A DNA stretch of 17,710 nt from Macrostomum lignano (Eukaryota): the NCBI GenBank assembly GCA_002269645.1, contig NIVC01005247.1, positions 1-17,710 on the forward strand, written 5' to 3'. Below the pieces are notes generated by a model, which saw nothing but the letters and a program-made list of their open reading frames with translations, was not told where the DNA came from and did no database searches. Position numbers and translations under genes: made by a program. Positions 1 through 17,710 of this stretch are shown here, piece after piece; position 1 is the first letter of the stretch; each line of letters opens with the position of its first letter.

Positions 1-401
1 ACACTATGTTGACGACACTTTTGCCATTTTCAAAGCGAACTCGTATCATGAACGGTTTCTTACCGCTCTGAACTCCACTCATAAAAACATCCAGACTTAG
101 CATACCGGAATCAATGTACATCAAGAATAAAAAAACAAGTCTCAATGTCCAGCTTATTCACAGTGGTGCGGGTCATTTGTTCAAGGTATTCTTAGTGTAG
201 GCACGAAGCATTGTAGTGCGCCCGCCTGTTTAAAACTTCCATCCAATGTACCTTCATAATTGGACAATCTGCCCCCCCTTTGGACTGTACAGAAACGTTT
301 TCTTATATAATTTGATGCATACGTGAAAAATAAAATATATCTCAGACGCTGAACATGGCCGCTGACTAAACCAAACGCGTTGGCTGACTGATTTAATTAA
401 A
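1..401 (+). mobile_element. Penelope-like element relic, partial at window edge (RT YVDD fragment, endonuclease C-terminus, 3' region)
   Basis: HYVDDTFAIF...FLTALNSTHKNIQ, then IPESMYIKNKKTSLNVQ in another frame (102-200). These resemble PLE RT motif C and the PLE C-terminal 'ES..IK...PSLN' motif. The 3' boundary is approximate (set at ATTAAA 396-401). Confidence 0.7.
342..387 (+). ncRNA. Degenerate minimal hammerhead-ribozyme-like motif (PLE pLTR type), present in every unit
   Basis: TCAGACG-CTGAACA-TGG..CC-AAA-CGCG-TT-GGCTGA. CUGANGA-like and GAAA-like boxes are both mutated, with a palindromic ACGCGT stem III, flanking TCAGAC/GGCTGA pairing (1 mismatch) and ATTAAA 9 nt downstream. Confidence 0.4.
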
Positions 402-630
402 GCAATCTATGTTGGTTTTGTTATTTATATTTCTGTGCTTACTCAAGCGAGCTACTTTTTAGCTCAACAAAAGCTTCTGATGCATTCTGACCTCTACGTT
501 ATGTCGGATATACGTTCAACTCTAGTTGTTGCCTTGATAGGGTTGATTCTGGGCATCTCTGCACTTCGCACCGACAATGATATTGTCATTTTCGTTGGGA
601 TTAAAATAGCAACAATGCAATTAACCGGTT

Positions 631-669
631 CTCTCTCTCTCTCGCTCTCTCTTGCTCTCTTTCTCTGTC
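631..669 (+). repeat. Interrupted (CT)n microsatellite, length-variable among units
   Basis: First (CT) run has 6, 7, 6, 6, 8 and 7 copies in units 1-6, followed by GCTCTCTCTTGCTCTCTTTCTCTGTC. Confidence 0.95.
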
Positions 670-776
670 GTTTGGAGCCATTCGACACTCATCTAATACC
701 CAAAAAGGAAATAATAAAAAAGACAATGAACGAACAGCTTCAACGGAAATAATAACGCATACTTCCTTTCAATCGG

Positions 777-782
777 TTTATT
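777..782 (-). terminator. Putative polyadenylation signal AATAAA of the peptide gene (also 3192, 5604, 11734, 14151, 16563)
   Basis: Plus-strand TTTATT is AATAAA on the minus strand, ~100 nt downstream of the TAA stop at 886-888. Confidence 0.65.
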
Positions 783-885
783 TTTCAGTTTTGAATCAAC
801 TGAATCGCAGGTTGTCAAAACGCACTCCTCCTATTCTAGGACAATCGACGGTCATGCTTCCATCGTTACCTTAATTAAAACAGAT

Positions 886-1071
886 TTATCCGCCATATCC
901 TTCGCAAGGTACAAAATCCCCTGCGCCAGCGCAACCCAAACCGCTATTACATAATTCAGGATAGCTGATGTAGCAGACTTCTTGCAAGCAGTAACAGCCT
1001 TGTCCATTGGCTGAATATGCTGCAAACGCAAGAAGCAACACCAGAAGAGAGAGGAAAGCTAGTCTCTGCAT
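886..1071 (-). CDS. Secreted cysteine-rich peptide precursor, 61 aa, copy 1
   Basis: MQRLAFLSLLVLLLAFAAYSANG|QGCYCLQEVCYISYPELCNSGLGCAGAGDFVPCEGYGG*. Classical signal peptide (basic N-terminus, Leu core, A-x-G cleavage site) plus 6 Cys. The true ATG is at 1069-1071; the ORF track's 81-aa version starts at a TTG. Confidence 0.8.
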   Translation of the reverse strand: MQRLAFLSLLVLLLAFAAYSANGQGCYCLQEVCYISYPELCNSGLGCAGAGDFVPCEGYGG

Positions 1072-1136
1072 TTGAACGGCGCTTGTTGCGATAAAAAAGG
1101 GACAAAACTTGCTGTCTCTTAGTGATTTCAATCAGC

Positions 1137-1168
1137 AATACTGCCAAATGCCCATGCAAGGCTATATA
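1137..1168 (-). promoter_or_regulatory. Putative core promoter of the peptide gene (TATA-like box and Inr-like site), repeated in each unit
   Basis: Minus strand TATATAG at 1168-1162. GCAGT with its A at 1142 lies 26 nt downstream. There is no ATG between 1142 and the start codon. CCAAT on the minus strand at 1268-1264. Confidence 0.5.
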
Positions 1169-1506
1169 GAAAATCAGTCCGGATGCGATAAGCAGATTTA
1201 TTATCGGAAAGCTCCTTATTTGGTATACACTGCATATACACACGCACACGCCTAGTAGCGATTATTGGTCGGACACACAATCTGAAAGATTTTAGAAATT
1301 AGCGATGTTGAATGAACAGGAAAGGCGATAAAGGTAAACAGGCAGAGCACTACGGTAGGAGCACTAGCAGAATGCCGATTCCGAATGCAGAGTTGCGTTA
1401 AGAAATTTCCACTGACACTGGCAGGTGGAGTCTGGCTGATCACCACTTTAGCATCGATAGCATACTATACGAGAGTATTTTAGGCACGGCGAGATAGGAA
1501 AACGAG

Positions 1507-1545
1507 TTGAAGATTGAAGATTTAAGATTGGAGATTGATTGAAGA
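1507..1545 (+). repeat. Degenerate 7-bp tandem repeat (TTGAAGA)
   Basis: TTGAAGA TTGAAGA TTTAAGA TTGGAGA TTGA TTGAAGA. Confidence 0.8.
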
Positions 1546-1855
1546 CGGAGCATCATTGACTTTGCTAGGGGTAAAATATCCAGCGCGACAGATAAAACAT
1601 TTTTTATTATCGATAGGAGATGGGTACAGGCAAGGTGCAAGGTGAGAATATTGAACATTAATTAGCTAGCCCAGGGAGGTGACGGTAAAATGACTGACCG
1701 CAAGCTACGTAGTGTACAAGTGTACATAAAAAGCTGCTTTGACTGGCCGACAAAACCATCAAGACAGCACTGCCTTGCAGCTTAATGAAAAGCGGTAGGC
1801 TGTGCGGCATTTTGCTTATTTTTAGGTTTGCATAATTAAGCTAAAGAGAGTAAAT

Positions 1856-1926
1856 CCAGAAAAGAGATGCTAAGCTGTGGACAAGAATGACGCTTAGCAC
1901 CTCTCCACAGACAATCCCGTTTCTGG
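1856..1926 (-). other. Crossing inverted repeats (pseudoknot-capable) inside an outer stem, present in every unit
   Basis: 1864-1875 pairs with 1892-1903 (12 bp; one A.C on plus becomes G.U on minus). 1876-1881 pairs with 1904-1909 (6 bp). 1856-1862 pairs with 1920-1926 (7 bp). Confidence 0.6.
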
Positions 1927-2082
1927 TTTATCCAGCCTGGGGCTGGTGCACATTTTCGGTTTGGGAGGCCGTAATTACGTGCTGGCTGCTGTCTGGTGCA
2001 GGTGCAATTGCGCGCGTGCACTATCCCTGGATGATAACGCTGAAGCCAAAGCTTTTTAAGCCCAGGCCGATAGCATACGGAT

Positions 2083-2370
2083 ATCGAGATGCTGTTAAGG
2101 AACGCCGAGACCTGGACGCTGACGGAATCGCTCGAACAGCAGGGTCGATGCGGCGCACGCTGGCCTGCTGCGCGCCGCCTTCAAGATCGGTTACGAGCGA
2201 GTCACCAATGCGGCACTCTATTGCTGCACCGGCCTGCTCCGTCCAAGCGAGCTGTTGTGCCGTCGGCGACTCCAGCTGGCAGGCCATATTTTATCCGAGC
2301 CGAGTCGTACTGCCCACAGCCGGTGCAGGAGGTGCTGCTGCTGACGCTGCAAGCACCCTACCGGCGGGGG
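2083..2370 (+). pseudogene. Degenerate RTE retrotransposon fragment (C-terminal coding part), copy 1
   Basis: Aligns by eye to 11178-11463 of the full-length element at roughly 85-90% identity, with frameshifts. Encodes NAETWTLT and IRAESYCPQPVQEVLLLTLQAPYRRG. Confidence 0.93.
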
Positions 2371-2814
2371 AAGCAGTGGATGACACCCTAAATTGTGCGC
2401 CTAGATTCTACAAACACTATGTTGACGACACTTTTGCCATTTTCAAAGCGAACTCGTATCATGAACGGTTTCTTACCGCTCTGAACTCCACTCATAAAAA
2501 CATCCAGACTTAGCATACCGGAATCAATGTACATCAAGAATAAAAAAACAAGTCTCAATGTCCAGCTTATTCACAGTGGTGCGGGTCATTTGTTCAAGGT
2601 ATTCTTAGTGTAGGCACGAAGCATTGTAGTGCGCCCGCCTGTTTAAAACTTCCATCCAATGTACCTTCATAATTGGACAATCTGCCCCCCCTTTGGACTG
2701 TACAGAAACGTTTTCTTATATAATTTGATGCATACGTGAAAAATAAAATATATCTCAGACGCTGAACATGGCCGCTGACTAAACCAAACGCGTTGGCTGA
2801 CTGATTTAATTAAA
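2371..2814 (+). mobile_element. Internally deleted Penelope-like element relic
   Basis: APRFYKHYVDDTFAIF...FLTALNSTHKNIQ (RT motif C region) is joined at ~2510 to IPESMYIKNKKTSLNVQ (PLE C-terminus), then a hammerhead-like motif (2755-2800) and ATTAAA (2809-2814). Confidence 0.72.
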
Positions 2815-3300
2815 GCAATCTATGTTGGTTTTGTTATTTATATTTCTGTGCTTACTCAAGCGAGCTACTTTTTAGCTCAACAAAAGCTTCTGATGCATTC
2901 TGACCTCTACGTTATGTCGGATATACGTTCAACTCTAGTTGTTGCCTTGATAGGGTTGATTCTGGGCATCTCTGCACTTCGCACCGACAATGATATTGTC
3001 ATTTTCGTTGGGATTAAAATAGCAACAATGCAATTAACCGGTTCTCTCTCTCTCTCTCGCTCTCTCTTGCTCTCTTTCTCTGTCGTTTGGAGCCATTCGA
3101 CACTCATCTAATACCCAAAAAGGAAATAATAAAAAAGACAATGAACGAACAGCTTCAACGGAAATAATAACGCATACTTCCTTTCAATCGGTTTATTTTT
3201 CAGTTTTGAATCAACTGAATCGCAGGTTGTCAAAACGCACTCCTCCTATTCTAGGACAATCGACGGTCATGCTTCCATCGTTACCTTAATTAAAACAGAT

Positions 3301-3486
3301 TTATCCGCCATATCCTTCGCAAGGTACAAAATCCCCTGCGCCAGCGCAACCCAAACCGCTATTACATAATTCAGGATAGCTGATGTAGCAGACTTCTTGC
3401 AAGCAGTAACAGCCTTGTCCATTGGCTGAATATGCTGCAAACGCAAGAAGCAACACCAGAAGAGAGAGGAAAGCTAGTCTCTGCAT
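3301..3486 (-). CDS. Secreted cysteine-rich peptide precursor, copy 2
   Basis: Translation identical to copy 1. Confidence 0.8.
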   Translation of the reverse strand: MQRLAFLSLLVLLLAFAAYSANGQGCYCLQEVCYISYPELCNSGLGCAGAGDFVPCEGYGG

Positions 3487-4497
3487 TTGAACGGCGCTTG
3501 TTGCGATAAAAAAGGGACAAAACTTGCTGTCTCTTAGTGATTTCAATCAGCAATACTGCCAAATGCCCATGCAAGGCTATATAGAAAATCAGTCCGGATG
3601 CGATAAGCAGATTTATTATCGGAAAGCTCCTTATTTGGTATACACTGCATATACACACGCACACGCCTAGTAGCGATTATTGGTCGGACACACAATCTGA
3701 AAGATTTTAGAAATTAGCGATGTTGAATGAACAGGAAAGGCGATAAAGGTAAACAGGCAGAGCACTACGGTAGGAGCACTAGCAGAATGCCGATTCCGAA
3801 TGCAGAGTTGCGTTAAGAAATTTCCACTGACACTGGCAGGTGGAGTCTGGCTGATCACCACTTTAGCATCGATAGCATACTATACGAGAGTATTTTAGGC
3901 ACGGCGAGATAGGAAAACGAGTTGAAGATTGAAGATTTAAGATTGGAGATTGATTGAAGACGGAGCATCATTGACTTTGCTAGGGGTAAAATATCCAGCG
4001 CGACAGATAAAACATTTTTTATTATCGATAGGAGATGGGTACAGGCAAGGTGCAAGGTGAGAATATTGAACATTAATTAGCTAGCCCAGGGAGGTGACGG
4101 TAAAATGACTGACCGCAAGCTACGTAGTGTACAAGTGTACATAAAAAGCTGCTTTGACTGGCCGACAAAACCATCAAGACAGCACTGCCTTGCAGCTTAA
4201 TGAAAAGCGGTAGGCTGTGCGGCATTTTGCTTATTTTTAGGTTTGCATAATTAAGCTAAAGAGAGTAAATCCAGAAAAGAGATGCTAAGCTGTGGACAAG
4301 AATGACGCTTAGCACCTCTCCACAGACAATCCCGTTTCTGGTTTATCCAGCCTGGGGCTGGTGCACATTTTCGGTTTGGGAGGCCGTAATTACGTGCTGG
4401 CTGCTGTCTGGTGCAGGTGCAATTGCGCGCGTGCACTATCCCTGGATGATAACGCTGAAGCCAAAGCTTTTTAAGCCCAGGCCGATAGCATACGGAT

Positions 4498-4784
4498 ATC
4501 GAGATGCTGTTAAGGAACGCCGAGACCTGGACGCTGACGGAATCGCTCGAACAGCAGGGTCGATGCGGCGCACGCTGGCCTGCTGCGCGCCGCCTTCAAG
4601 ATCGGTTACGAGCGAGTCACCAATGCGGCACTCTATTGCTGCACCGGCCTGCTCCGTCCAAGCGAGCTGTTGTGCCGTCGGCGACTCCAGCTGGCAGGCC
4701 ATATTTTATCCGAGCCGAGTCGTACTGCCCACAGCCGGTGCAGGAGGTGCTGCTGCTGACGCTGCAAGCACCCTACCGGCGGGG
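4498..4784 (+). pseudogene. Degenerate RTE fragment, copy 2
   Basis: Same as 2083-2370; terminal G run is G4 instead of G5. Confidence 0.93.
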
Positions 4785-5228
4785 AAGCAGTGGATGACAC
4801 CCTAAATTGTGCGCCTAGATTCTACAAACACTATGTTGACGACACTTTTGCCATTTTCAAAGCGAACTCGTATCATGAACGGTTTCTTACCGCTCTGAAC
4901 TCCACTCATAAAAACATCCAGACTTAGCATACCGGAATCAATGTACATCAAGAATAAAAAAACAAGTCTCAATGTCCAGCTTATTCACAGTGGTGCGGGT
5001 CATTTGTTCAAGGTATTCTTAGTGTAGGCACGAAGCATTGTAGTGCGCCCGCCTGTTTAAAACTTCCATCCAATGTACCTTCATAATTGGACAATCTGCC
5101 CCCCCTTTGGACTGTACAGAAACGTTTTCTTATATAATTTGATGCATACGTGAAAAATAAAATATATCTCAGACGCTGAACATGGCCGCTGACTAAACCA
5201 AACGCGTTGGCTGACTGATTTAATTAAA
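4785..5228 (+). mobile_element. Internally deleted Penelope-like element relic
   Basis: Same sequence as 2371-2814. Confidence 0.72.
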
Positions 5229-5712
5229 GCAATCTATGTTGGTTTTGTTATTTATATTTCTGTGCTTACTCAAGCGAGCTACTTTTTAGCTCAACAAAAG
5301 CTTCTGATGCATTCTGACCTCTACGTTATGTCGGATATACGTTCAACTCTAGTTGTTGCCTTGATAGGGTTGATTCTGGGCATCTCTGCACTTCGCACCG
5401 ACAATGATATTGTCATTTTCGTTGGGATTAAAATAGCAACAATGCAATTAACCGGTTCTCTCTCTCTCTCGCTCTCTCTTGCTCTCTTTCTCTGTCGTTT
5501 GGAGCCATTCGACACTCATCTAATACCCAAAAAGGAAATAATAAAAAAGACAATGAACGAACAGCTTCAACGGAAATAATAACGCATACTTCCTTTCAAT
5601 CGGTTTATTTTTCAGTTTTGAATCAACTGAATCGCAGGTTGTCAAAACGCACTCCTCCTATTCTAGGACAATCGACGGTCATGCTTCCATCGTTACCTTA
5701 ATTAAAACAGAT

Positions 5713-5898
5713 TTATCCGCCATATCCTTCGCAAGGTACAAAATCCCCTGCGCCAGCGCAACCCAAACCGCTATTACATAATTCAGGATAGCTGATGTAG
5801 CAGACTTCTTGCAAGCAGTAACAGCCTTGTCCATTGGCTGAATATGCTGCAAACGCAAGAAGCAACACCAGAAGAGAGAGGAAAGCTAGTCTCTGCAT
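5713..5898 (-). CDS. Secreted cysteine-rich peptide precursor, copy 3
   Basis: Translation identical to copy 1. Confidence 0.8.
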   Translation of the reverse strand: MQRLAFLSLLVLLLAFAAYSANGQGCYCLQEVCYISYPELCNSGLGCAGAGDFVPCEGYGG

Positions 5899-6908
5899 TT
5901 GAACGGCGCTTGTTGCGATAAAAAAGGGACAAAACTTGCTGTCTCTTAGTGATTTCAATCAGCAATACTGCCAAATGCCCATGCAAGGCTATATAGAAAA
6001 TCAGTCCGGATGCGATAAGCAGATTTATTATCGGAAAGCTCCTTATTTGGTATACACTGCATATACACACGCACACGCCTAGTAGCGATTATTGGTCGGA
6101 CACACAATCTGAAAGATTTTAGAAATTAGCGATGTTGAATGAACAGGAAAGGCGATAAAGGTAAACAGGCAGAGCACTACGGTAGGAGCACTAGCAGAAT
6201 GCCGATTCCGAATGCAGAGTTGCGTTAAGAAATTTCCACTGACACTGGCAGGTGGAGTCTGGCTGATCACCACTTTAGCATCGATAGCATACTATACGAG
6301 AGTATTTTAGGCACGGCGAGATAGGAAAACGAGTTGAAGATTGAAGATTTAAGATTGGAGATTGATTGAAGACGGAGCATCATTGACTTTGCTAGGGGTA
6401 AAATATCCAGCGCGACAGATAAAACATTTTTTTTATCGATAGGAGATGGGTACAGGCAAGGTGCAAGGTGAGAATATTGAACATTAATTAGCTAGCCCAG
6501 GGAGGTGACGGTAAAATGACTGACCGCAAGCTACGTAGTGTACAAGTGTACATAAAAAGCTGCTTTGACTGGCCGACAAAACCATCAAGACAGCACTGCC
6601 TTGCAGCTTAATGAAAAGCGGTAGGCTGTGCGGCATTTTGCTTATTTTTAGGTTTGCATAATTAAGCTAAAGAGAGTAAATCCAGAAAAGAGATGCTAAG
6701 CTGTGGACAAGAATGACGCTTAGCACCTCTCCACAGACAATCCCGTTTCTGGTTTATCCAGCCTGGGGCTGGTGCACATTTTCGGTTTGGGAGGCCGTAA
6801 TTACGTGCTGGCTGCTGTCTGGTGCAGGTGCAATTGCGCGCGTGCACTATCCCTGGATGATAACGCTGAAGCCAAAGCTTTTTAAGCCCAGGCCGATAGC
6901 ATACGGAT

Positions 6909-7196
6909 ATCGAGATGCTGTTAAGGAACGCCGAGACCTGGACGCTGACGGAATCGCTCGAACAGCAGGGTCGATGCGGCGCACGCTGGCCTGCTGCGCG
7001 CCGCCTTCAAGATCGGTTACGAGCGAGTCACCAATGCGGCACTCTATTGCTGCACCGGCCTGCTCCGTCCAAGCGAGCTGTTGTGCCGTCGGCGACTCCA
7101 GCTGGCAGGCCATATTTTATCCGAGCCGAGTCGTACTGCCCACAGCCGGTGCAGGAGGTGCTGCTGCTGACGCTGCAAGCACCCTACCGGCGGGGG
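6909..7196 (+). pseudogene. Degenerate RTE fragment, copy 3
   Basis: Same as 2083-2370. Confidence 0.93.
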
Positions 7197-7639
7197 AAGC
7201 AGTGGATGACACCCTAAATTGTGCGCCTAGATTCTACAAACACTATGTTGACGACACTTTTGCCATTTTCAAAGCGAACTCGTATCATGAACGGTTTCTT
7301 ACCGCTCTGAACTCCACTCATAAAAACATCCAGACTTAGCATACCGGAATCAATGTACATCAAGAATAAAAAAACAAGTCTCAATGTCCAGCTTATTCAC
7401 AGTGGTGCGGGTCATTTGTTCAAGGTATTCTTAGTGTAGGCACGAAGCATTGTAGTGCGCCCGCCTGTTTAAAACTTCCATCCAATGTACCTTCATAATT
7501 GGACAATCTGCCCCCCTTTGGACTGTACAGAAACGTTTTCTTATATAATTTGATGCATACGTGAAAAATAAAATATATCTCAGACGCTGAACATGGCCGC
7601 TGACTAAACCAAACGCGTTGGCTGACTGATTTAATTAAA
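7197..7639 (+). mobile_element. Internally deleted Penelope-like element relic
   Basis: Same as 2371-2814 except a C6 rather than C7 run. Confidence 0.72.
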
Positions 7640-7901
7640 GCAATCTATGTTGGTTTTGTTATTTATATTTCTGTGCTTACTCAAGCGAGCTACTTTTTAG
7701 CTCAACAAAAGCTTCTGATGCATTCTGACCTCTACGTTATGTCGGATATACGTTCAACTCTAGTTGTTGCCTTGATAGGGTTGATTCTGGGCATCTCTGC
7801 ACTTCGCACCGACAATGATATTGTCATTTTCGTTGGGATTAAAATAGCAACAATGCAATTAACCGGTTCTCTCTCTCTCTCGCTCTCTCTTGCTCTCTTT
7901 C

Positions 7902-7907
7902 TCTGTC
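7902..7907 (+). repeat. Left target-site duplication TCTGTC
   Basis: Empty units read CTCTGTCGTTTGG. The filled unit has TCTGTC at both 7902-7907 and 11621-11626. Confidence 0.9.
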
Positions 7908-8448
7908 TTAATTTATTTGCAGTCTTAATTTATTTGCAGTCTTAATTTATTTGCAGTCTTAATTTATTTGCAGTCTTAATTTATTTGCAGTCTTAATTTA
8001 TTTGCAGTCTTAATTTATTTGCAGTCTTAATTTATTTGCAGTCTTAATTTATTTGCAGTCTTAATTTATTTGCAGTCTTAATTTATTTGCAGTCTTAATT
8101 TATTTGCAGTCTTAATTTATTTGCAGTCTTAATTTATTTGCAGTCTTAATTTATTTGCAGTCTTAATTTATTTGCAGTCTTAATTTATTTGCAGTCTTAA
8201 TTTATTTGCAGTCTTAATTTATTTGCAGTCTTAATTTATTTGCAGTCTTAATTTATTTGCAGTCTTAATTTATTTGCAGTCTTAATTTATTTGCAGTCTT
8301 AATTTATTTGCAGTCTTAATTTATTTGCAGTCTTAATTTATTTGCAGTCTTAATTTATTTGCAGTCTTAATTTATTTGCAGTCTTAATTTATTTGCAGTC
8401 TTAATTTATTTGCAGTCTTAATTTATTTGCAGTCTTAATTTATTTGCA
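7905..8448 (+). repeat. 32 perfect tandem copies of GTCTTAATTTATTTGCA (17 bp) at the retrotransposon 5' end
   Basis: 544 bp = 32 x 17. Phase was checked at every 60-nt line start and no variant was seen. The first GTC is shared with the TSD. Confidence 0.98.
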
Positions 8449-8465
8449 CCACGGTGCAGATAAAT
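8438..8465 (+). other. 12-bp hairpin with CACG loop at the junction of the repeat array and the ORF
   Basis: ATTTATTTGCAC-CACG-GTGCAGATAAAT, with one G.U pair. The last two stem bases are the AT of ATG 8464-8466. Confidence 0.8.
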
Positions 8466-11400
8466 GCCGCTACCTCCTCGTGGTCAGAGCGGAGAGCCGC
8501 GCTTAACTGCTGCGGCGGCCAAATGCGGCAGGACCAAGCGAGGGCAGCGGAGCGCCCGTCGGCGTGTTGAGCGCCGGCGTGAGCGGAACCGACGAGGCCG
8601 GCTGCGTGGCGCCGCCCGTCGAGCTGCCGCGCGGGTCCACTCGGATCCTCCGGGTGGCGCCGGGGACCGTGAGGCTCAACTGCATCGAGCCCCAGCCGTA
8701 CCACAGGGCATGCTTCGGGTCGGGACGCTGAACTGCCGCACTCTCAAGGCTGCTTGGCGTAGAGGGGTGCTGGCGAAGCTGGCGTACGACCTGAGCTGCG
8801 ACATCATCTCGCTGCAGGAGGTGTCTATCAAGGCCGACCCGGGACTTCATTGTGAGGACTTGGGCGCCGGGTGGACCCTCTACTATACTTCTGCGGACCA
8901 GCGAGGCCGTGGAGGAGTTGGAGCGCTGATCGGGCCGAGGCTGCAGCAGAGCTGTCGCTGCATCTCCCTGTCCCCCGGTTGCTTCGGATCGACGTCCGGC
9001 TACGCGGTCGGAATGCTCGCCTGTTCTGCGCGTACGCGCCCCCTGCCACACGCCCTGACGAGGCTCAAGAGTTTTTCGAGCAGCTCTCAGTGCAGGTAGA
9101 GGCGACGGCGCAGCGTGACACAGCGGTCGCCCTCGGAGACCTGAACGCAGTCCTGCGTAGGTCCGAGAGGTCGCTGTTCGTGACGCCACGCGGGAACAAC
9201 AACACCGAGGCACTAGAGGACTTCCTGGAGAGGCAGGACATGGTGTCGGCCAACACCCGCTTCCGCAAGCCACTGAGCGGTCTCGCAACCTTCGTGGGCT
9301 GCAAGCGGAGGCGACGGAACGCGCGTGGCAGGAACGCAACCCGGAGACAAGCACAGCTCGACCACGTGCTCGTGCGTTTCCGTGAGCGTCGTCGCGCCGT
9401 CAACTGCCGCACCATCACGCCGCTGGCTCTGCGGTCCGATCACCGGCTCCTCATCTGCGACCTCAACCTTCGCGATCCGCTCTACCGTCCGCCGAAGCGG
9501 CCACCGCGGCGCTACTACCGCGCGCTCAGAGCCACCGATACGCAGCGTCGCTTTGCTAGCGCCTTTAACACCGCGCTGGGCGACAAGCGTGGAAGTGCCG
9601 AGTATGCGGAAGTGTGCGCTGCAATCAGAACCGCCGCGGAGCAAGCAGTCCCGATGATGCAGCCGGCTCAACGTGGGCAGCCGGTCTGGCAGGACGACCC
9701 CGCGATTCAGGCAGCGAGGGAAGATCTGGAGAAGCTCCGCTTGAGCAGGCGACCAACCCGCGAGGCAGAGGCAGCTCTGGCAGCTGTCTACCTGCAGCGC
9801 CAACAAGCGGCTGTCGATGACGCCATTCAGGCTGTCTCTGCCGCTGGGCCCGATGCCAGAGGGCGCGTGGCCTGGTCCGCCATCAACGCTCTGACGGGAC
9901 GAAAGCGGCGCAATCCGCTGAACCTGGCTGGTGACACGCCGGACGAGCGTAGGAACGAGCTGCGCGAGTTCTTCGCCGCCATCGTCAACGCGCCGCCACC
10001 CCCGCTGCCAGACAGTCTGACGCTGCCGCCGGAGACGCCGCTGCCGGCAGAGGAGAGTTTCAGCGTAGCCCCAGTCAACGCAGCCGACGTTGTCAAGCTC
10101 GCCCAGCAGTCACCGGGCGGGAAAGCGCTGGGTCCGGACGAGGTGCCCATCGAGGCGCTGCGCATCCCCTGTGTGGCCGCTGAGGTCGCCAGAGTGATGA
10201 ACCGCGTGCTCTTCGGTGAGGCGGCGCCCAACGAATGGACCACGGCGCACATCGTCGCTGTTCCAAAGAAGCCGGGCACCACTAGGCTTGAAGACCATCG
10301 AGGCATCTGCCTTCAGTCCTGTGCAGCGAAGCTGTTCAACCGGATGCTGCTTTCGCGGTTGCAGCCCGTGCTGGATCCGTACCTGCGCCCAGAGCAGAAC
10401 GGGTTCCGGCCCCATCGCGGCACAGTGGCGCAGATCCTGGCTCTTCGCCGAGTCATCGAGGAGGCGCGGATTCGTCAGTCGATACTGATTTTAATCTTTA
10501 TTGATTTCAAGAAGGCATTCGACTCGGTTGTCAGAGCCGTGCTTCCAATGGTGCTCCGCGCGTACAACGTGCCTGAGCAGCTGATCTCCGCCGTCATGGC
10601 GATGTACCGTGATACGACAGCTGCTGTGACAACACCGGACGGCCTATCGGACTCCTTTGAGACATCCTCCGGAGTGCTTCAGGGAGATACGCTGGCGCCG
10701 TTTCTGTTCGTCCTGGTGCTTGACTGGGTGCTGCGGACTGCTCTTCCTACCGACGACGACGGTTTTCTGCTGCAGCGACGCGTGGGTCGACGTCAACCGG
10801 AGAAGCGGCTCAGCGTGCTTGGCTACGCCGACGACCTCGCCCTGCTGTCCTCGACCGTCGAGGGCGCCCAACGGCAGCTGGACAGGCTGGTTGCCGTTGC
10901 GGCGAGTGTCGGCCTGGTGGTCAACACGCAGAAGACCGTTGTGCTCTGCGTGCCGGACGACATCGAGGCTGCAATATTTTGCCGAGGCGCTGACGGGCAG
11001 GCGACCGAACTCCCGCGATGTCAGCAGTTCGTCTACCTCGGCGGTCTGGTTCCAGACGCTCGCGAGGACCTGCGACGCCGCCGCGGGCTTGCCTGGGCTG
11101 CCTTTCGTTCTGTGAGGGCAGTCCTGCAGTCCGAGGCCCTACCGGACCGCCAGAGGGCGGCGCTGTTCCAGGCGGTAATCGAGACCGTCCTGCTGTACAA
11201 CGCCGAGACCTGGACGCTGACGGACTCACTCGAACAGCAAGTCGATGCGGCGCACGCTGGTCTGCTGCGCGCCGCCTTCAACATCGGCGTCGAGCGAGTC
11301 ACCAACGCGGCACTCTATCGCCGCGCTGGCCTGCCACGTCCAAGTGATCTACTGCGCCGTCGGCGACTCCAGCTCGCAGGCCATCTCATCCGCGCCGAGT

Positions 11401-11575
11401 CGTACTGCCACAGCCGGTGCAGGAGGTGCTGCTGCTCACGCTGCAGGCACCCTACCGGCGAGGTCAAGCGCGAACTCGGCGTTATGTCGACTGTCTGCTG
11501 GCTGACGCCGGCGCCCCGGACACTGCCGGTGGCGCGGCCTTTGTTCGCGCCCACGCCATGAAGCGCGCCCTGTGA
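8464..11575 (+). CDS. Retrotransposon APE endonuclease-reverse transcriptase polyprotein (1037 aa if two missing C bases are restored; frameshifts at 8972-8976 and 11408-11409)
   Basis: APE motifs: TLNCRTL, LQEV, CAYAP, GDLNA, LDHVL, SDH. RT motifs: HRGICL, EQNGFR, IDFKKAFDSV, GVLQGDTLAPFLF, YADDL, GLVVNTQKT, YLGG. Split across track ORFs 8464-9099 and 8871-11561; the corrected stop is TGA 11573-11575. Confidence 0.9.
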
Positions 11576-11605
11576 CGCTGACTTTTACCATCATGACAGC
11601 GTATT

Positions 11606-11620
11606 TTGTTGTTGTTGTTG
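11606..11620 (+). repeat. (TTG)5 3' tail of the retrotransposon
   Basis: TTG x5 directly before the right TSD. RTE elements typically end in short tandem repeats. Confidence 0.9.
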
Positions 11621-11626
11621 TCTGTC
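11621..11626 (+). repeat. Right target-site duplication TCTGTC
   Basis: Followed by GTTTGGAGCC, where the host unit resumes. Confidence 0.9.
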
Positions 11627-11842
11627 GTTTGGAGCCATTCGACACTCATCTAATACCCAAAAAGGAAATAATAAAAAAGACAATGAACGAACAGCTTCAA
11701 CGGAAATAATAACGCATACTTCCTTTCAATCGGTTTATTTTTCAGTTTTGAATCAACTGAATCGCAGGTTGTCAAAACGCACTCCTCCTATTCTAGGACA
11801 ATCGACGGTCATGCTTCCATCGTTACCTTAATTAAAACAGAT

Positions 11843-12028
11843 TTATCCGCCATATCCTTCGCAAGGTACAAAATCCCCTGCGCCAGCGCAACCCAAACCG
11901 CTATTACATAATTCAGGATAGCTGATGTAGCAGACTTCTTGCAAGCAGTAACAGCCTTGTCCATTGGCTGAATATGCTGCAAACGCAAGAAGCAACACCA
12001 GAAGAGAGAGGAAAGCTAGTCTCTGCAT
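11843..12028 (-). CDS. Secreted cysteine-rich peptide precursor, copy 4
   Basis: Translation identical to copy 1; not disrupted by the insertion. Confidence 0.8.
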   Translation of the reverse strand: MQRLAFLSLLVLLLAFAAYSANGQGCYCLQEVCYISYPELCNSGLGCAGAGDFVPCEGYGG

Positions 12029-13039
12029 TTGAACGGCGCTTGTTGCGATAAAAAAGGGACAAAACTTGCTGTCTCTTAGTGATTTCAATCAGCAATACTG
12101 CCAAATGCCCATGCAAGGCTATATAGAAAATCAGTCCGGATGCGATAAGCAGATTTATTATCGGAAAGCTCCTTATTTGGCATACACTGCATATACACAC
12201 GCACACGCCTAGTAGCGATTATTGGTCGGACACACAATCTGAAAGATTTTAGAAATTAGCGATGTTGAATGAACAGGAAAGGCGATAAAGGTAAACAGGC
12301 AGAGCACTACGGTAGGAGCACTAGCAGAATGCCGATTCCGAATGCAGAGTTGCGTTAAGAAATTTCCACTGACACTGGCAGGTGGAGTCTGGCTGATCAC
12401 CACTTTAGCATCGATAGCATACTATACGAGAGTATTTTAGGCACGGCGAGATAGGAAAACGAGTTGAAGATTGAAGATTTAAGATTGGAGATTGATTGAA
12501 GACGGAGCATCATTCACTTTGCTAGGGGTAAAATATCCAGCGCGACAGATAAAACATTTTTTATTATCGATAGGAGATGGGTACAGGCAAGGTGCAAGGT
12601 GAGAATATTGAACATTAATTAGCTAGCCCAGGGAGGTGACGGTAAAATGACTGACCGCAAGCTACGTAGTGTACAAGTGTACATAAAAAGCTGCTTTGAC
12701 TGGCCGACAAAACCATCAAGACAGCACTGCCTTGCAGCTTAATGAAAAGCGGTAGGCTGTGCGGCATTTTGCTTATTTTTAGGTTTGCATAATTAAGCTA
12801 AAGAGAGTAAATCCAGAAAAGAGATGCTAAGCTGTGGACAAGAATGACGCTTAGCACCTCTCCACAGACAATCCCGTTTCTGGTTTATCCAGCCTGGGGC
12901 TGGTGCACATTTTCGGTTTGGGAGGCCGTAATTACGTGCTGGCTGCTGTCTGGTGCAGGTGCAATTGCGCGCGTGCACTATCCCTGGATGATAACGCTGA
13001 AGCCAAAGCTTTTTAAGCCCAGGCCGATAGCATACGGAT

Positions 13040-13327
13040 ATCGAGATGCTGTTAAGGAACGCCGAGACCTGGACGCTGACGGAATCGCTCGAACAGCAGG
13101 GTCGATGCGGCGCACGCTGGCCTGCTGCGCGCCGCCTTCAAGATCGGTTACGAGCGAGTCACCAATGCGGCACTCTATTGCTGCACCGGCCTGCTCCGTC
13201 CAAGCGAGCTGTTGTGCCGTCGGCGACTCCAGCTGGCAGGCCATATTTTATCCGAGCCGAGTCGTACTGCCCACAGCCGGTGCAGGAGGTGCTGCTGCTG
13301 ACGCTGCAAGCACCCTACCGGCGGGGG
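13040..13327 (+). pseudogene. Degenerate RTE fragment, copy 4
   Basis: Same as 2083-2370. Confidence 0.93.
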
Positions 13328-13771
13328 AAGCAGTGGATGACACCCTAAATTGTGCGCCTAGATTCTACAAACACTATGTTGACGACACTTTTGCCATTTT
13401 CAAAGCGAACTCGTATCATGAACGGTTTCTTACCGCTCTGAACTCCACTCATAAAAACATCCAGACTTAGCATACCGGAATCAATGTACATCAAGAATAA
13501 AAAAACAAGTCTCAATGTCCAGCTTATTCACAGTGGTGCGGGTCATTTGTTCAAGGTATTCTTAGTGTAGGCACGAAGCATTGTAGTGCGCCCGCCTGTT
13601 TAAAACTTCCATCCAATGTACCTTCATAATTGGACAATCTGCCCCCCCTTTGGACTGTACAGAAACGTTTTCTTATATAATTTGATGCATACGTGAAAAA
13701 TAAAATATATCTCAGACGCTGAACATGGCCGCTGACTAAACCAAACGCGTTGGCTGACTGATTTAATTAAA
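13328..13771 (+). mobile_element. Internally deleted Penelope-like element relic
   Basis: Same as 2371-2814. Confidence 0.72.
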
Positions 13772-14259
13772 GCAATCTATGTTGGTTTTGTTATTTATAT
13801 TTCTGTGCTTACTCAAGCGAGCTACTTTTTAGCTCAACAAAAGCTTCTGATGCATTCTGACCTCTACGTTATGTCGGATATACGTTCAACTCTAGTTGTT
13901 GCCTTGATAGGGTTGATTCTGGGCATCTCTGCACTTCGCACCGACAATGATATTGTCATTTTCGTTGGGATTAAAATAGCAACAATGCAATTAACCGGTT
14001 CTCTCTCTCTCTCTCTCGCTCTCTCTTGCTCTCTTTCTCTGTCGTTTGGAGCCATTCGACACTCATCTAATACCCAAAAAGGAAATAATAAAAAAGACAA
14101 TGAACGAACAGCTTCAACGGAAATAATAACGCATACTTCCTTTCAATCGGTTTATTTTTCAGTTTTGAATCAACTGAATCGCAGGTTGTCAAAACGCACT
14201 CCTCCTATTCTAGGACAATCGACGGTCATGCTTCCATCGTTACCTTAATTAAAACAGAT

Positions 14260-14445
14260 TTATCCGCCATATCCTTCGCAAGGTACAAAATCCCCTGCGC
14301 CAGCGCAACCCAAACCGCTATTACATAATTCAGGATAGCTGATGTAGCAGACTTCTTGCAAGCAGTAACAGCCTTGTCCATTGGCTGAATATGCTGCAAA
14401 CGCAAGAAGCAACACCAGAAGAGAGAGGAAAGCTAGTCTCTGCAT
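14260..14445 (-). CDS. Secreted cysteine-rich peptide precursor, copy 5
   Basis: Translation identical to copy 1. Confidence 0.8.
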   Translation of the reverse strand: MQRLAFLSLLVLLLAFAAYSANGQGCYCLQEVCYISYPELCNSGLGCAGAGDFVPCEGYGG

Positions 14446-15455
14446 TTGAACGGCGCTTGTTGCGATAAAAAAGGGACAAAACTTGCTGTCTCTTAGTGAT
14501 TTCAATCAGCAATACTGCCAAATGCCCATGCAAGGCTATATAGAAAATCAGTCCGGATGCGATAAGCAGATTTATTATCGGAAAGCTCCTTATTTGGTAT
14601 ACACTGCATATACACACGCACACGCCTAGTAGCGATTATTGGTCGGACACACAATCTGAAAGATTTTAGAAATTAGCGATGTTGAATGAACAGGAAAGGC
14701 GATAAAGGTAAACAGGCAGAGCACTACGGTAGGAGCACTAGCAGAATGCCGATTCCGAATGCAGAGTTGCGTTAAGAAATTTCCACTGACACTGGCAGGT
14801 GGAGTCTGGCTGATCACCACTTTAGCATCGATAGCATACTATACGAGAGTATTTTAGGCACGGCGAGATAGGAAAACGAGTTGAAGATTGAAGATTTAAG
14901 ATTGGAGATTGATTGAAGACGGAGCATCATTGACTTTGCTAGGGGTAAAATATCCAGCGCGACAGATAAAACATTTTTTATTATCGATAGGAGATGGGTA
15001 CAGGCAAGGTGCAAGGTGAGAATATTGAACATTAATTAGCTAGCCCAGGGGGTGACGGTAAAATGACTGACCGCAAGCTACGTAGTGTACAAGTGTACAT
15101 AAAAAGCTGCTTTGACTGGCCGACAAAACCATCAAGACAGCACTGCCTTGCAGCTTAATGAAAAGCGGTAGGCTGTGCGGCATTTTGCTTATTTTTAGGT
15201 TTGCATAATTAAGCTAAAGAGAGTAAATCCAGAAAAGAGATGCTAAGCTGTGGACAAGAATGACGCTTAGCACCTCTCCACAGACAATCCCGTTTCTGGT
15301 TTATCCAGCCTGGGGCTGGTGCACATTTTCGGTTTGGGAGGCCGTAATTACGTGCTGGCTGCTGTCTGGTGCAGGTGCAATTGCGCGCGTGCACTATCCC
15401 TGGATGATAACGCTGAAGCCAAAGCTTTTTAAGCCCAGGCCGATAGCATACGGAT

Positions 15456-15742
15456 ATCGAGATGCTGTTAAGGAACGCCGAGACCTGGACGCTGACGGAA
15501 TCGCTCGAACAGCAGGGTCGATGCGGCGCACGCTGGCCTGCTGCGCGCCGCCTTCAAGATCGGTTACGAGCGAGTCACCAATGCGGCACTCTATTGCTGC
15601 ACCGGCCTGCTCCGTCCAAGCGAGCTGTTGTGCCGTCGGCGACTCCAGCTGGCAGGCCATATTTTATCCGAGCCGAGTCGTACTGCCCACAGCCGGTGCA
15701 GGAGGTGCTGCTGCTGACGCTGCAAGCACCCTACCGGCGGGG
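15456..15742 (+). pseudogene. Degenerate RTE fragment, copy 5
   Basis: Same as 2083-2370; terminal run is G4. Confidence 0.93.
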
Positions 15743-16185
15743 AAGCAGTGGATGACACCCTAAATTGTGCGCCTAGATTCTACAAACACTATGTTGACGA
15801 CACTTTTGCCATTTTCAAAGCGAACTCGTATCATGAACGGTTTCTTACCGCTCTGAACTCCACTCATAAAAACATCCAGACTTAGCATACCGGAATCAAT
15901 GTACATCAAGAATAAAAAAACAAGTCTCAATGTCCAGCTTATTCACAGTGGTGCGGGTCATTTGTTCAAGGTATTCTTAGTGTAGGCACGAAGCATTGTA
16001 GTGCGCCCGCCTGTTTAAAACTTCCATCCAATGTACCTTCATAATTGGACAATCTGCCCCCCTTTGGACTGTACAGAAACGTTTTCTTATATAATTTGAT
16101 GCATACGTGAAAAATAAAATATATCTCAGACGCTGAACATGGCCGCTGACTAAACCAAACGCGTTGGCTGACTGATTTAATTAAA
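15743..16185 (+). mobile_element. Internally deleted Penelope-like element relic
   Basis: Same as 2371-2814 except a C6 run. Confidence 0.72.
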
Positions 16186-16671
16186 GCAATCTATGTTGGT
16201 TTTGTTATTTATATTTCTGTGCTTACTCAAGCGAGCTACTTTTTAGCTCAACAAAAGCTTCTGATGCATTCTGACCTCTACGTTATGTCGGATATACGTT
16301 CAACTCTAGTTGTTGCCTTGATAGGGTTGATTCTGGGCATCTCTGCACTTCGCACCGACAATGATATTGTCATTTTCGTTGGGATTAAAATAGCAACAAT
16401 GCAATTAACCGGTTCTCTCTCTCTCTCTCGCTCTCTCTTGCTCTCTTTCTCTGTCGTTTGGAGCCATTCGACACTCATCTAATACCCAAAAAGGAAATAA
16501 TAAAAAAGACAATGAACGAACAGCTTCAACGGAAATAATAACGCATACTTCCTTTCAATCGGTTTATTTTTCAGTTTTGAATCAACTGAATCGCAGGTTG
16601 TCAAAACGCACTCCTCCTATTCTAGGACAATCGACGGTCATGCTTCCATCGTTACCTTAATTAAAACAGAT

Positions 16672-16857
16672 TTATCCGCCATATCCTTCGCAAGGTACAA
16701 AATCCCCTGCGCCAGCGCAACCCAAACCGCTATTACATAATTCAGGATAGCTGATGTAGCAGACTTCTTGCAAGCAGTAACAGCCTTGTCCATTGGCTGA
16801 ATATGCTGCAAACGCAAGAAGCAACACCAGAAGAGAGAGGAAAGCTAGTCTCTGCAT
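16672..16857 (-). CDS. Secreted cysteine-rich peptide precursor, copy 6
   Basis: Translation identical to copy 1. Confidence 0.8.
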   Translation of the reverse strand: MQRLAFLSLLVLLLAFAAYSANGQGCYCLQEVCYISYPELCNSGLGCAGAGDFVPCEGYGG

Positions 16858-17710
16858 TTGAACGGCGCTTGTTGCGATAAAAAAGGGACAAAACTTGCTG
16901 TCTCTTAGTGATTTCAATCAGCAATACTGCCAAATGCCCATGCAAGGCTATATAGAAAATCAGTCCGGATGCGATAAGCAGATTTATTATCGGAAAGCTC
17001 CTTATTTGGTATACACTGCATATACACACGCACACGCCTAGTAGCGATTATTGGTCGGACACACAATCTGAAAGATTTTAGAAATTAGCGATGTTGAATG
17101 AACAGGAAAGGCGATAAAGGTAAACAGGCAGAGCACTACGGTAGGAGCACTAGCAGAATGCCGATTCCGAATGCAGAGTTGCGTTAAGAAATTTCCACTG
17201 ACACTGGCAGGTGGAGTCTGGCTGATCACCACTTTAGCATCGATAGCATACTATACGAGAGTATTTTAGGCACGGCGAGATAGGAAAACGAGTTGAAGAT
17301 TGAAGATTTAAGATTGGAGATTGATTGAAGACGGAGCATCATTGACTTTGCTAGGGGTAAAATATCCAGCGCGACAGATAAAACATTTTTTATTATCGAT
17401 AGGAGATGGGTACAGGCAAGGTGCAAGGTGAGAATATTGAACATTAATTAGCTAGCCCAGGGAGGTGACGGTAAAATGACTGACCGCAAGCTACGTAGTG
17501 TACAAGTGTACATAAAAAGCTGCTTTGACTGGCCGACAAAACCATCAAGACAGCACTGCCTTGCAGCTTAATGAAAAGCGGTAGGCTGTGCGGCATTTTG
17601 CTTATTTTAGGTTTGCATAATTAAGCTAAAAGAGAGTAAATCCAGAAAAGAGATGCTAAGCTGTGGACAAGAATGACGCTTAGCACCTCTCCACAGACAA
17701 TCCCGTTTCT

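Follow-up and report, generated by a model that had tools for sequence, protein, structure and literature searches.

A 17,710-bp stretch of DNA from Macrostomum lignano, a free-living flatworm (contig NIVC01005247.1; hereafter the window), holds a head-to-tail array of nearly identical units of 2411–2417 bp, and within each unit there is probably a genuine gene, lineage-restricted and consisting of one exon, whose product would be a small six-cysteine peptide destined for secretion. The gene would lie within a repeat-rich segment that has been amplified recently or is homogenized continuously. We put the probability of this reading at roughly 0.6.

The predicted gene and its product

The candidate gene is a minus-strand open reading frame (ORF) of 61 amino acids (aa), of which the window has six copies without a single difference in DNA or protein (Table 1). 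Its product is MQRLAFLSLLVLLLAFAAYSANG followed by QGCYCLQEVCYISYPELCNSGLGCAGAGDFVPCEGYGG, the precursor being written here as split at the predicted cleavage site. The signal peptide consists of an n-region, MQR, and a 15-residue h-region, LAFLSLLVLLLAFAA, with a grand average of hydropathy (GRAVY) of 2.85, and the small residues A21 and G23 occupy positions −3 and −1, so that cleavage between G23 and Q24 satisfies the −3/−1 rule. By a heuristic that combines a positively charged n-region, a hydrophobic h-region of 7–15 residues and small residues at −3/−1, the ORF has the classical features of a secretory precursor. In a unit, ten ATG ORFs reach 40 aa or more, and none but this one passes. 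The remaining 38-aa region shows the cysteine spacing C-X-C-X4-C-X7-C-X5-C-X8-C and contains four acidic residues (three E, one D) and no K, R or H; its calculated net charge is about −4.3 at pH 7 and its mass 3.93 kDa. Direct reading of the translation, together with the heuristic, thus confirms the initial annotation of the window, which had described a signal peptide joined to an acidic six-cysteine region of this size and composition.

Upstream of the ORF, a TATATAG motif begins 97 nt before the ATG, and the predicted 5' untranslated region contains no other ATG. Downstream, an AATAAA, the only one within 300 nt, stands 104–109 nt after the stop codon. The ORF, the putative TATA box and the AATAAA are intact in all six copies. 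With a background frequency in the unit of about 0.001 per nt per strand for TATAWA, and likewise of about one per 1000 nt per strand for AATAAA, the joint chance of both motifs being so placed is about 0.014.

The rate at which comparable ORFs arise by chance was estimated from 4000 simulated units of 2415 bp, for which a second-order Markov model was trained on the array sequence. Per unit, the simulation yielded 4.9 ATG ORFs with a length of 50 aa or more, 0.031 signal-peptide-like ORFs, and 0.0025 signal-peptide-like ATG ORFs of that length with six or more cysteines after the signal; the combination of a signal-peptide-like segment, at least six cysteines and no K, R or H occurred in none of the 4000 units. 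At the scale of one window these figures favour a real gene. One alternative is that the array is a non-functional complex satellite, or a segmental tandem repeat of ordinary DNA and transposon debris, and that its 61-aa ORF arose by accident or is the remnant of a dead gene, neither transcribed nor translated. We consider this unlikely. In its favour, about five ATG ORFs of at least 50 aa are expected per unit by chance alone, and a rate of 0.0025 per 2.4 kb amounts to hundreds of chance ORFs of the more demanding kind in a genome of several hundred Mb. Every unit includes a piece of a retrotransposon as well as two microsatellites, a retrotransposon that inserted into the array has stayed there, and the peptide lacks a homologue, an annotation and a confident fold. 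What speaks against a non-functional repeat is that a signal peptide, six cysteines without a basic residue, a TATA motif at −97 and the sole nearby AATAAA at +105 are jointly unlikely to meet in one window. Three further observations were counted in favour of a gene, namely that no RNA gene or other recognizable protein in the unit explains the array, that the unit is a mosaic including a transposon fragment, as expected of normal genomic DNA amplified around a gene, and that the retrotransposon insertion falls outside the putative transcription unit.

If the gene is real, its transcription would be driven by a TATA-type promoter situated about 97 nt before the ATG, giving an intronless transcript of about 380 nt that would end shortly after the AATAAA, the latter lying about 105 nt downstream of the stop codon. 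An N-terminal signal peptide would direct the precursor of 61 aa into the secretory pathway, with cleavage most likely between G23 and Q24 or, alternatively, between S20 and A21. In the resulting 38-aa product the cysteines would form three disulfides, the N-terminal Gln could be converted to pyroglutamate and the C-terminal Gly to an amide, and the outcome would be a strongly acidic, presumably protease-resistant peptide of 3.9 kDa, released to the outside or into the lumen of a gland. Unequal crossing-over between units may have created the array and may keep it homogeneous, and many identical, self-contained transcription units would be expected to raise output; selection for dosage is possible.

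Searches for relatives and for a fold

Several results weigh against a real gene. No homologue of the 61-aa peptide was found in a word-indexed search of 5.8 billion clusters or in an exhaustive phmmer search against 1.84 billion protein representatives. Neither the precursor nor the mature region matched a Pfam family, even at E-values of up to 10 in the case of EGF, the sole rows returned being sub-threshold matches (DIM, GPR180) to the hydrophobic signal segment, and no PDB sequence matched the peptide. Back-translated patterns of the peptide matched 600 times in the metagenome contigs of the Joint Genome Institute (JGI), and none of these matches was confirmed; a DNA pattern for the cysteine framework yielded, among the matches listed, solely TG/GC-microsatellite artefacts. 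A single-sequence AlphaFold2 model reached a mean predicted local distance difference test (pLDDT) score of 65.7, with an N-terminal hairpin only and an undefined C-terminal half, and a Foldseek search with this low-confidence model found no match in the PDB; structure prediction followed by Foldseek had been proposed in the initial annotation as a check, and we draw no conclusion in either direction from its outcome. To these searches can be added that C, not a purine, occupies position −3 relative to the ATG, that the features entered in the chance model were chosen after the ORF had been seen and the signal-peptide rule is crude, which makes the chance estimates optimistic, and that the copies carry no signal of purifying selection, their non-coding parts being equally identical. 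Support for a real gene is intrinsic to the sequence: that each unit holds a "convincing gene", as had been stated, is something we infer from the signal peptide, the even number of cysteines, the non-chance composition, the TATA box and the poly(A) signal, and neither an orthologue nor a confident fold adds to them.

The negative results on homologues are weaker than they look, because the source genome lies outside the coverage of the gene-position index, which has no record of the exact product of the 61-aa ORF or of those of two longer plus-strand ORFs of the unit, of 208 and 167 aa. Also, for a cysteine-rich domain of 38 residues, relatives below roughly half identity would miss the E-value threshold of libraries of such size. 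No diverged paralogues of the peptide occur within the window. A string search of the literature for the peptide gave nothing, and it is absent from the text and supplements of PMC5977470 as far as these were accessible. With all homology searches empty, the earlier description of the peptide family as unrecognized stands.

The array and the identity of its units

Table 1. Positions of the predicted gene copies, flanking motifs and repeats in the 17,710-bp window.
Feature	Position	Strand	Remarks
61-aa ORF copy 1 (signal peptide and six-cysteine acidic region; stop codon included)	886..1071	-	
61-aa ORF copy 2	3301..3486	-	
61-aa ORF copy 3	5713..5898	-	
61-aa ORF copy 4	11843..12028	-	retrotransposon junction ~220 bp past stop codon, ~110 bp past its AATAAA
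61-aa ORF copy 5	14260..14445	-	
61-aa ORF copy 6	16672..16857	-	
Putative TATA box CTATATAGCC	3575..3584	-	function predicted; in other units at 1160-1169, 5987-5996, 12117-12126, 14534-14543, 16946-16955
Putative poly(A) signal AATAAA	3192..3197	-	function predicted; equivalents at 777-782, 5604-5609, 11734-11739, 14151-14156, 16563-16568
Left part of tandem array	1..7907	.	self-BLAST, unit alignment; partial unit 1-885, full units 886-3300 and 3301-5712, first 2195 bp of interrupted unit 5713-7907
Right part of tandem array	11627..17710	.	self-BLAST, unit alignment; last 216 bp of interrupted unit 11627-11842, full units 11843-14259 and 14260-16671, partial unit 16672-17710
(TC)n microsatellite	3043..3081	.	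Tandem Repeats Finder (TRF), unit alignment; in every unit, length varying between units; neighbourhood of the retrotransposon insertion
Old frameshifted fragment, C-terminal coding region of the inserted retrotransposon's family	4504..4791	+	in every unit, e.g. 2089-2380, 13046-13340
Near-full-length non-LTR (long terminal repeat) retrotransposon, endonuclease and reverse transcriptase	7908..11620	+	GC profile, Pfam, relatives
32 perfect tandem copies of the 17-mer GTCTTAATTTATTTGCA, 5' end of element	7905..8448	+	TRF, 100% matches
(TTG)5, 3' tail of retrotransposon	11606..11620	+	
Target-site duplication TCTGTC	7902..7907	.	second copy 11621-11626

Self-BLAST of the unit at 886-3300 against the 17,710-bp window recovers units in head-to-tail order that are 99.8–100% identical. 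Both ends of the window fall within a unit, which confirms the earlier observation that the array runs off on either side, and the array sequence present amounts to 5.8 unit lengths. From one ORF to the next the spacings are 2415, 2412, 6130 (across the insert), 2417 and 2412 bp. The initial annotation had extended the array over positions 1-17710; the head-to-tail units are indeed there, but the segment 7908-11620 is a retrotransposon, which it had overlooked.

Identity between units is about 99.9% throughout, non-coding parts included. The five full units differ in 10 of 2417 alignment columns, comprising two substitutions, both private to one unit, four one-base deletions and four columns of (TC)n length. 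No variant column falls inside the 61-aa ORF, where fewer than one would be expected given so little variation, and the transposon debris and microsatellites of the unit are as identical between copies as the ORF itself. As far as the unit alignment can tell, copy identity reflects recent amplification or homogenization of the whole unit and not constraint on the peptide. The report that all six copies give the same protein is accordingly true and uninformative on purifying selection, because the non-coding sequence is equally identical, and amplification for dosage, which had been read from it, does not follow, possible as it may be.

The same uniformity bears on the view that the gene is real and its array a neutral or selfish amplification that is not kept for dosage, for example a young block, ampliconic or heterochromatic, with most of its copies silent. 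An identity of about 99.9% that extends equally over non-coding sequence fits a very recent expansion or gene conversion irrespective of the ORF, and a retrotransposon insertion has been tolerated inside the array; on the other hand, all six ORFs and their putative promoters are intact, and a neutral history and selected dosage look alike at the level of sequence. We hold such an amplification to be rather improbable. The lowest probability, a very small one, is assigned to an artefact of assembly or amplification, by which a single- or few-copy segment, or a small circular molecule, was written out as a tandem array. In its favour, the units are nearly identical, and among the 10 variant columns four are losses of a single base, of which three lie within or next to a homopolymer, a pattern expected from long-read errors. 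Against this origin, a retrotransposon flanked by a target-site duplication sits in one unit, with the array in register on both sides of it, two substitutions are private to one unit, the length of (TC)n varies among units, and near-identical arrays are usually collapsed, not expanded, by assemblers.

The one-base deletions lie at unit alignment columns 721, 792, 1481 and 1800 (for instance in the region of window position 4781). Three of the four have a homopolymer context (A after T6, G5, C7) and the fourth is an A within GGGAGG; one of them toggles a plus-strand ORF between 208 and 167 aa. This pattern suggests residual long-read errors, in which case the true identity of the units may be even higher.

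Other contents of the unit

Besides the 61-aa ORF, each unit contains a fragment of about 290 bp, roughly a tenth of its length, that matches positions 11199-11460 of the inserted retrotransposon with 88.7% DNA identity (blastn) and is also matched in tblastn searches with the ORF of the element and with at least 30 relatives. Beside it, at 2406-2510 on the plus strand and at the equivalent places of the other units, a stretch with the translation FYKHYVDDTFAIFKANSYHERFLTALNSTHKNIQT carries a YVDD-type motif; it resembles what would be left of the YVDD region of another reverse transcriptase, and Pfam finds no match to it. In addition to (TC)n, TRF finds a second microsatellite, (TTGAAGA)4.6, in each unit. 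The remaining ORFs of the unit matched no Pfam family, and a homology search with the 208-aa plus-strand ORF was empty.

Rfam gave nothing at the gathering score over the whole window and nothing at E-values of up to 1 on one unit, and a tRNA search of the sequence found none. The spliced leader of M. lignano, of 35 nt and with the 3' part AGACTCAATTTATTGCATG (PMC8629364), was not found with up to three mismatches allowed. Since no RNA gene was found in the unit by any of these searches, a classical RNA-gene array (5S, snRNA, spliced-leader RNA or tRNA) was rejected. A concatemer of a small circular replicon or virus was rejected as well, as no ORF of the unit resembles a Rep or capsid protein and the array contains a retrotransposon with a target-site duplication. 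Because a retrotransposon fragment is present in each unit and a near-full-length element in one, the array looks like ordinary repeat-rich genomic DNA amplified as a block and not like a clean gene cassette.

The inserted retrotransposon

The insert is about 3.7 kb long, has a GC content of 65%, makes up 21% of the window and interrupts one unit next to the (TC)n tract. It is convergent with ORF copy 4 and lies beyond the putative poly(A) signal of that copy. Pfam recognizes RVT_1 (5.8e-28) and, weakly, Exo_endo_phos. Relatives of the insert are 50–89% identical, and all of the named ones come from Macrostomum lignano, which would point to a host in or near the macrostomid flatworms; close relatives, with 53–89% protein identity, are also present in marine (Tara Oceans) and other metagenomes. 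Relative to the closest of them, P0001, the reading frame of the insert is broken twice, at 8950-8970 and at 11402-11408; the breaks may be genuine mutations that inactivate the element or else errors of one base in the assembly, like those seen between units.

RTE-type non-LTR elements have a single ORF encoding an endonuclease and a reverse transcriptase, a length of about 3.2–3.5 kb and a simple-repeat tail, and their clade is set by reverse-transcriptase phylogeny. The insert resembles them in its body of about 3.2 kb, its single long ORF, its AP (apurinic/apyrimidinic)-endonuclease-like and reverse-transcriptase domains, its microsatellite tail and its short target-site duplication, a fit to the clade that is one of features only, whereas its 32-copy array of a 17-bp repeat at the 5' end is unusual. 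All four relatives that were read at their 3' ends (L001-L004) finish in (TTG)4–7 and not in poly(A). As the insert abuts a TC tract, site-specific insertion into (TC)n was considered; it is unsupported, the flanks of L002 and L003 being unrelated.

At the 5' end, a hairpin (ATTTATTTGCACC / GGTGCAGATAAAT, window 7905-8480) has the last copy of the 17-mer as its 5' arm. A hairpin is found at the equivalent place in two relatives, with compensating sequence differences (L002 1-90; L004 1-60), and L004 also has a tandem duplication of a 17-nt piece bearing the 5' arm. A conserved 5'-terminal hairpin with a repeated 5' arm may thus be a trait of the element family. Read across a repeat junction, the 17-mer (AGTCTTAATTTATTTGCAGT) is similar to the 3' portion of the spliced leader of M. 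lignano, with one gap and a few mismatches (PMC8629364). An origin of the 17-mer as a spliced-leader remnant was rejected, since the resemblance needs a gap and mismatches and the 5' hairpin offers a better explanation; the similarity is probably a coincidence, and it is less likely that the element acquired its 5' end by trans-splicing.

Significance

If the peptide is real, it represents a taxon-restricted secreted product that has escaped annotation in a clade of flatworms that serves as a model for reproduction, adhesion and regeneration, and one that gene callers and protein databases miss entirely, as none of the collections searched contains it. An array of so many near-identical copies would also be a clear case for studying copy number against secretory output. 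For genome annotation it would be a practical warning that small ORFs in repeat-masked tandem arrays get discarded. Should the ORF not be expressed, what remains is a complex tandem repeat of an ordinary sort into which a retrotransposon has inserted, and this is of little wider importance.

Comparison with known systems

The cysteine framework was compared with those of known disulfide-rich families. Knottins (inhibitor cystine knots) share a knotted fold and a consensus of approximately C-X3-7-C-X3-6-C-X0-5-C-X1-4-C-X4-13-C; the loops of the peptide, of 1, 4, 7, 5 and 8 residues, are out of range at positions 1, 3 and 4, and no Pfam or PDB sequence match points to this family. CS-alpha/beta defensins pair a CXXXC with a C-terminal CXC and usually carry a net positive charge, whereas the peptide contains no CXXXC, has its sole CXC at the N-terminal end and a charge of about −4, and gives no Pfam match. 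The EGF-like domain, C-X7-C-X4-5-C-X10-13-C-X-C-X8-C, has its loops in an order other than the 1, 4, 7, 5, 8 of the peptide, and Pfam returned no match to it within the permissive limit given above. Metallothioneins of the CUP1 type are cytosolic, lack a signal peptide and consist of 20–30% cysteine arranged in CXC and CXXC clusters, in contrast to a product with a signal peptide, six cysteines in 38 residues (16%) and a single CXC. The bare conotoxin framework IX (C-C-C-C-C-C) is matched formally; membership of the conotoxin superfamilies is defined by a conserved signal sequence, and among the 1.84 billion representatives there is no relative of the signal or of the mature region, and nothing that would support membership.

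As an array, the closest comparison is with yeast CUP1, which has units of about 2 kb and a 61-aa cysteine-rich product, and with the arrays of fish antifreeze proteins, in both of which copy number sets output. By analogy, they share with the present array the head-to-tail order, the near identity of units measuring a few kb and, in every unit, a separate promoter (putative in our case) and a very small ORF. The product of CUP1 differs in being a metallothionein of the cytosol that has no signal peptide and is much richer in cysteine, and the link between copy number and phenotype has been shown for CUP1 and the antifreeze arrays, whereas the array described here is known from its sequence alone.

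In the character of its product, the candidate gene recalls the pheromones of Euplotes raikovi (Er-1 and its relatives) and the attractin of Aplysia, water-borne signals of about 38–58 residues that are made with a signal peptide, are strongly acidic and have six cysteines in three disulfides. The likeness is one of kind only and concerns size, acidity, number of cysteines and the signal peptide; the organisms are unrelated, their pheromones have helical folds and another cysteine spacing, and there is no sequence similarity. Extending the analogy, one may speculate that the peptide is the founding member of a new disulfide-rich family with a fold of its own, acidic, blocked by pyroglutamate and amide and made in bulk by a free-living flatworm from dozens of identical genes, and that it could act as a water-borne or mating signal, as the acidic six-cysteine pheromones of ciliates and sea hares do, or as a component of an external secretion; we regard this elaborate proposal as doubtful.

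Closer in taxonomic terms are the putative seminal-fluid proteins of M. lignano, Mlig-pro1-76, which are secreted by glands and several of which have no identifiable homologue or domain (PMC5977470). Among the gland-specific secreted proteins of that species many lack a recognizable homologue, which was counted as context in favour of a gene. Like the predicted peptide, they are small proteins with predicted signal peptides from the same probable host clade; unlike it, their genes are not described as lying in 2.4-kb tandem arrays, and no sequence link connects them with the peptide. Taxon-restricted, secreted, cysteine-rich peptides encoded in tandem arrays are, as a kind, familiar.

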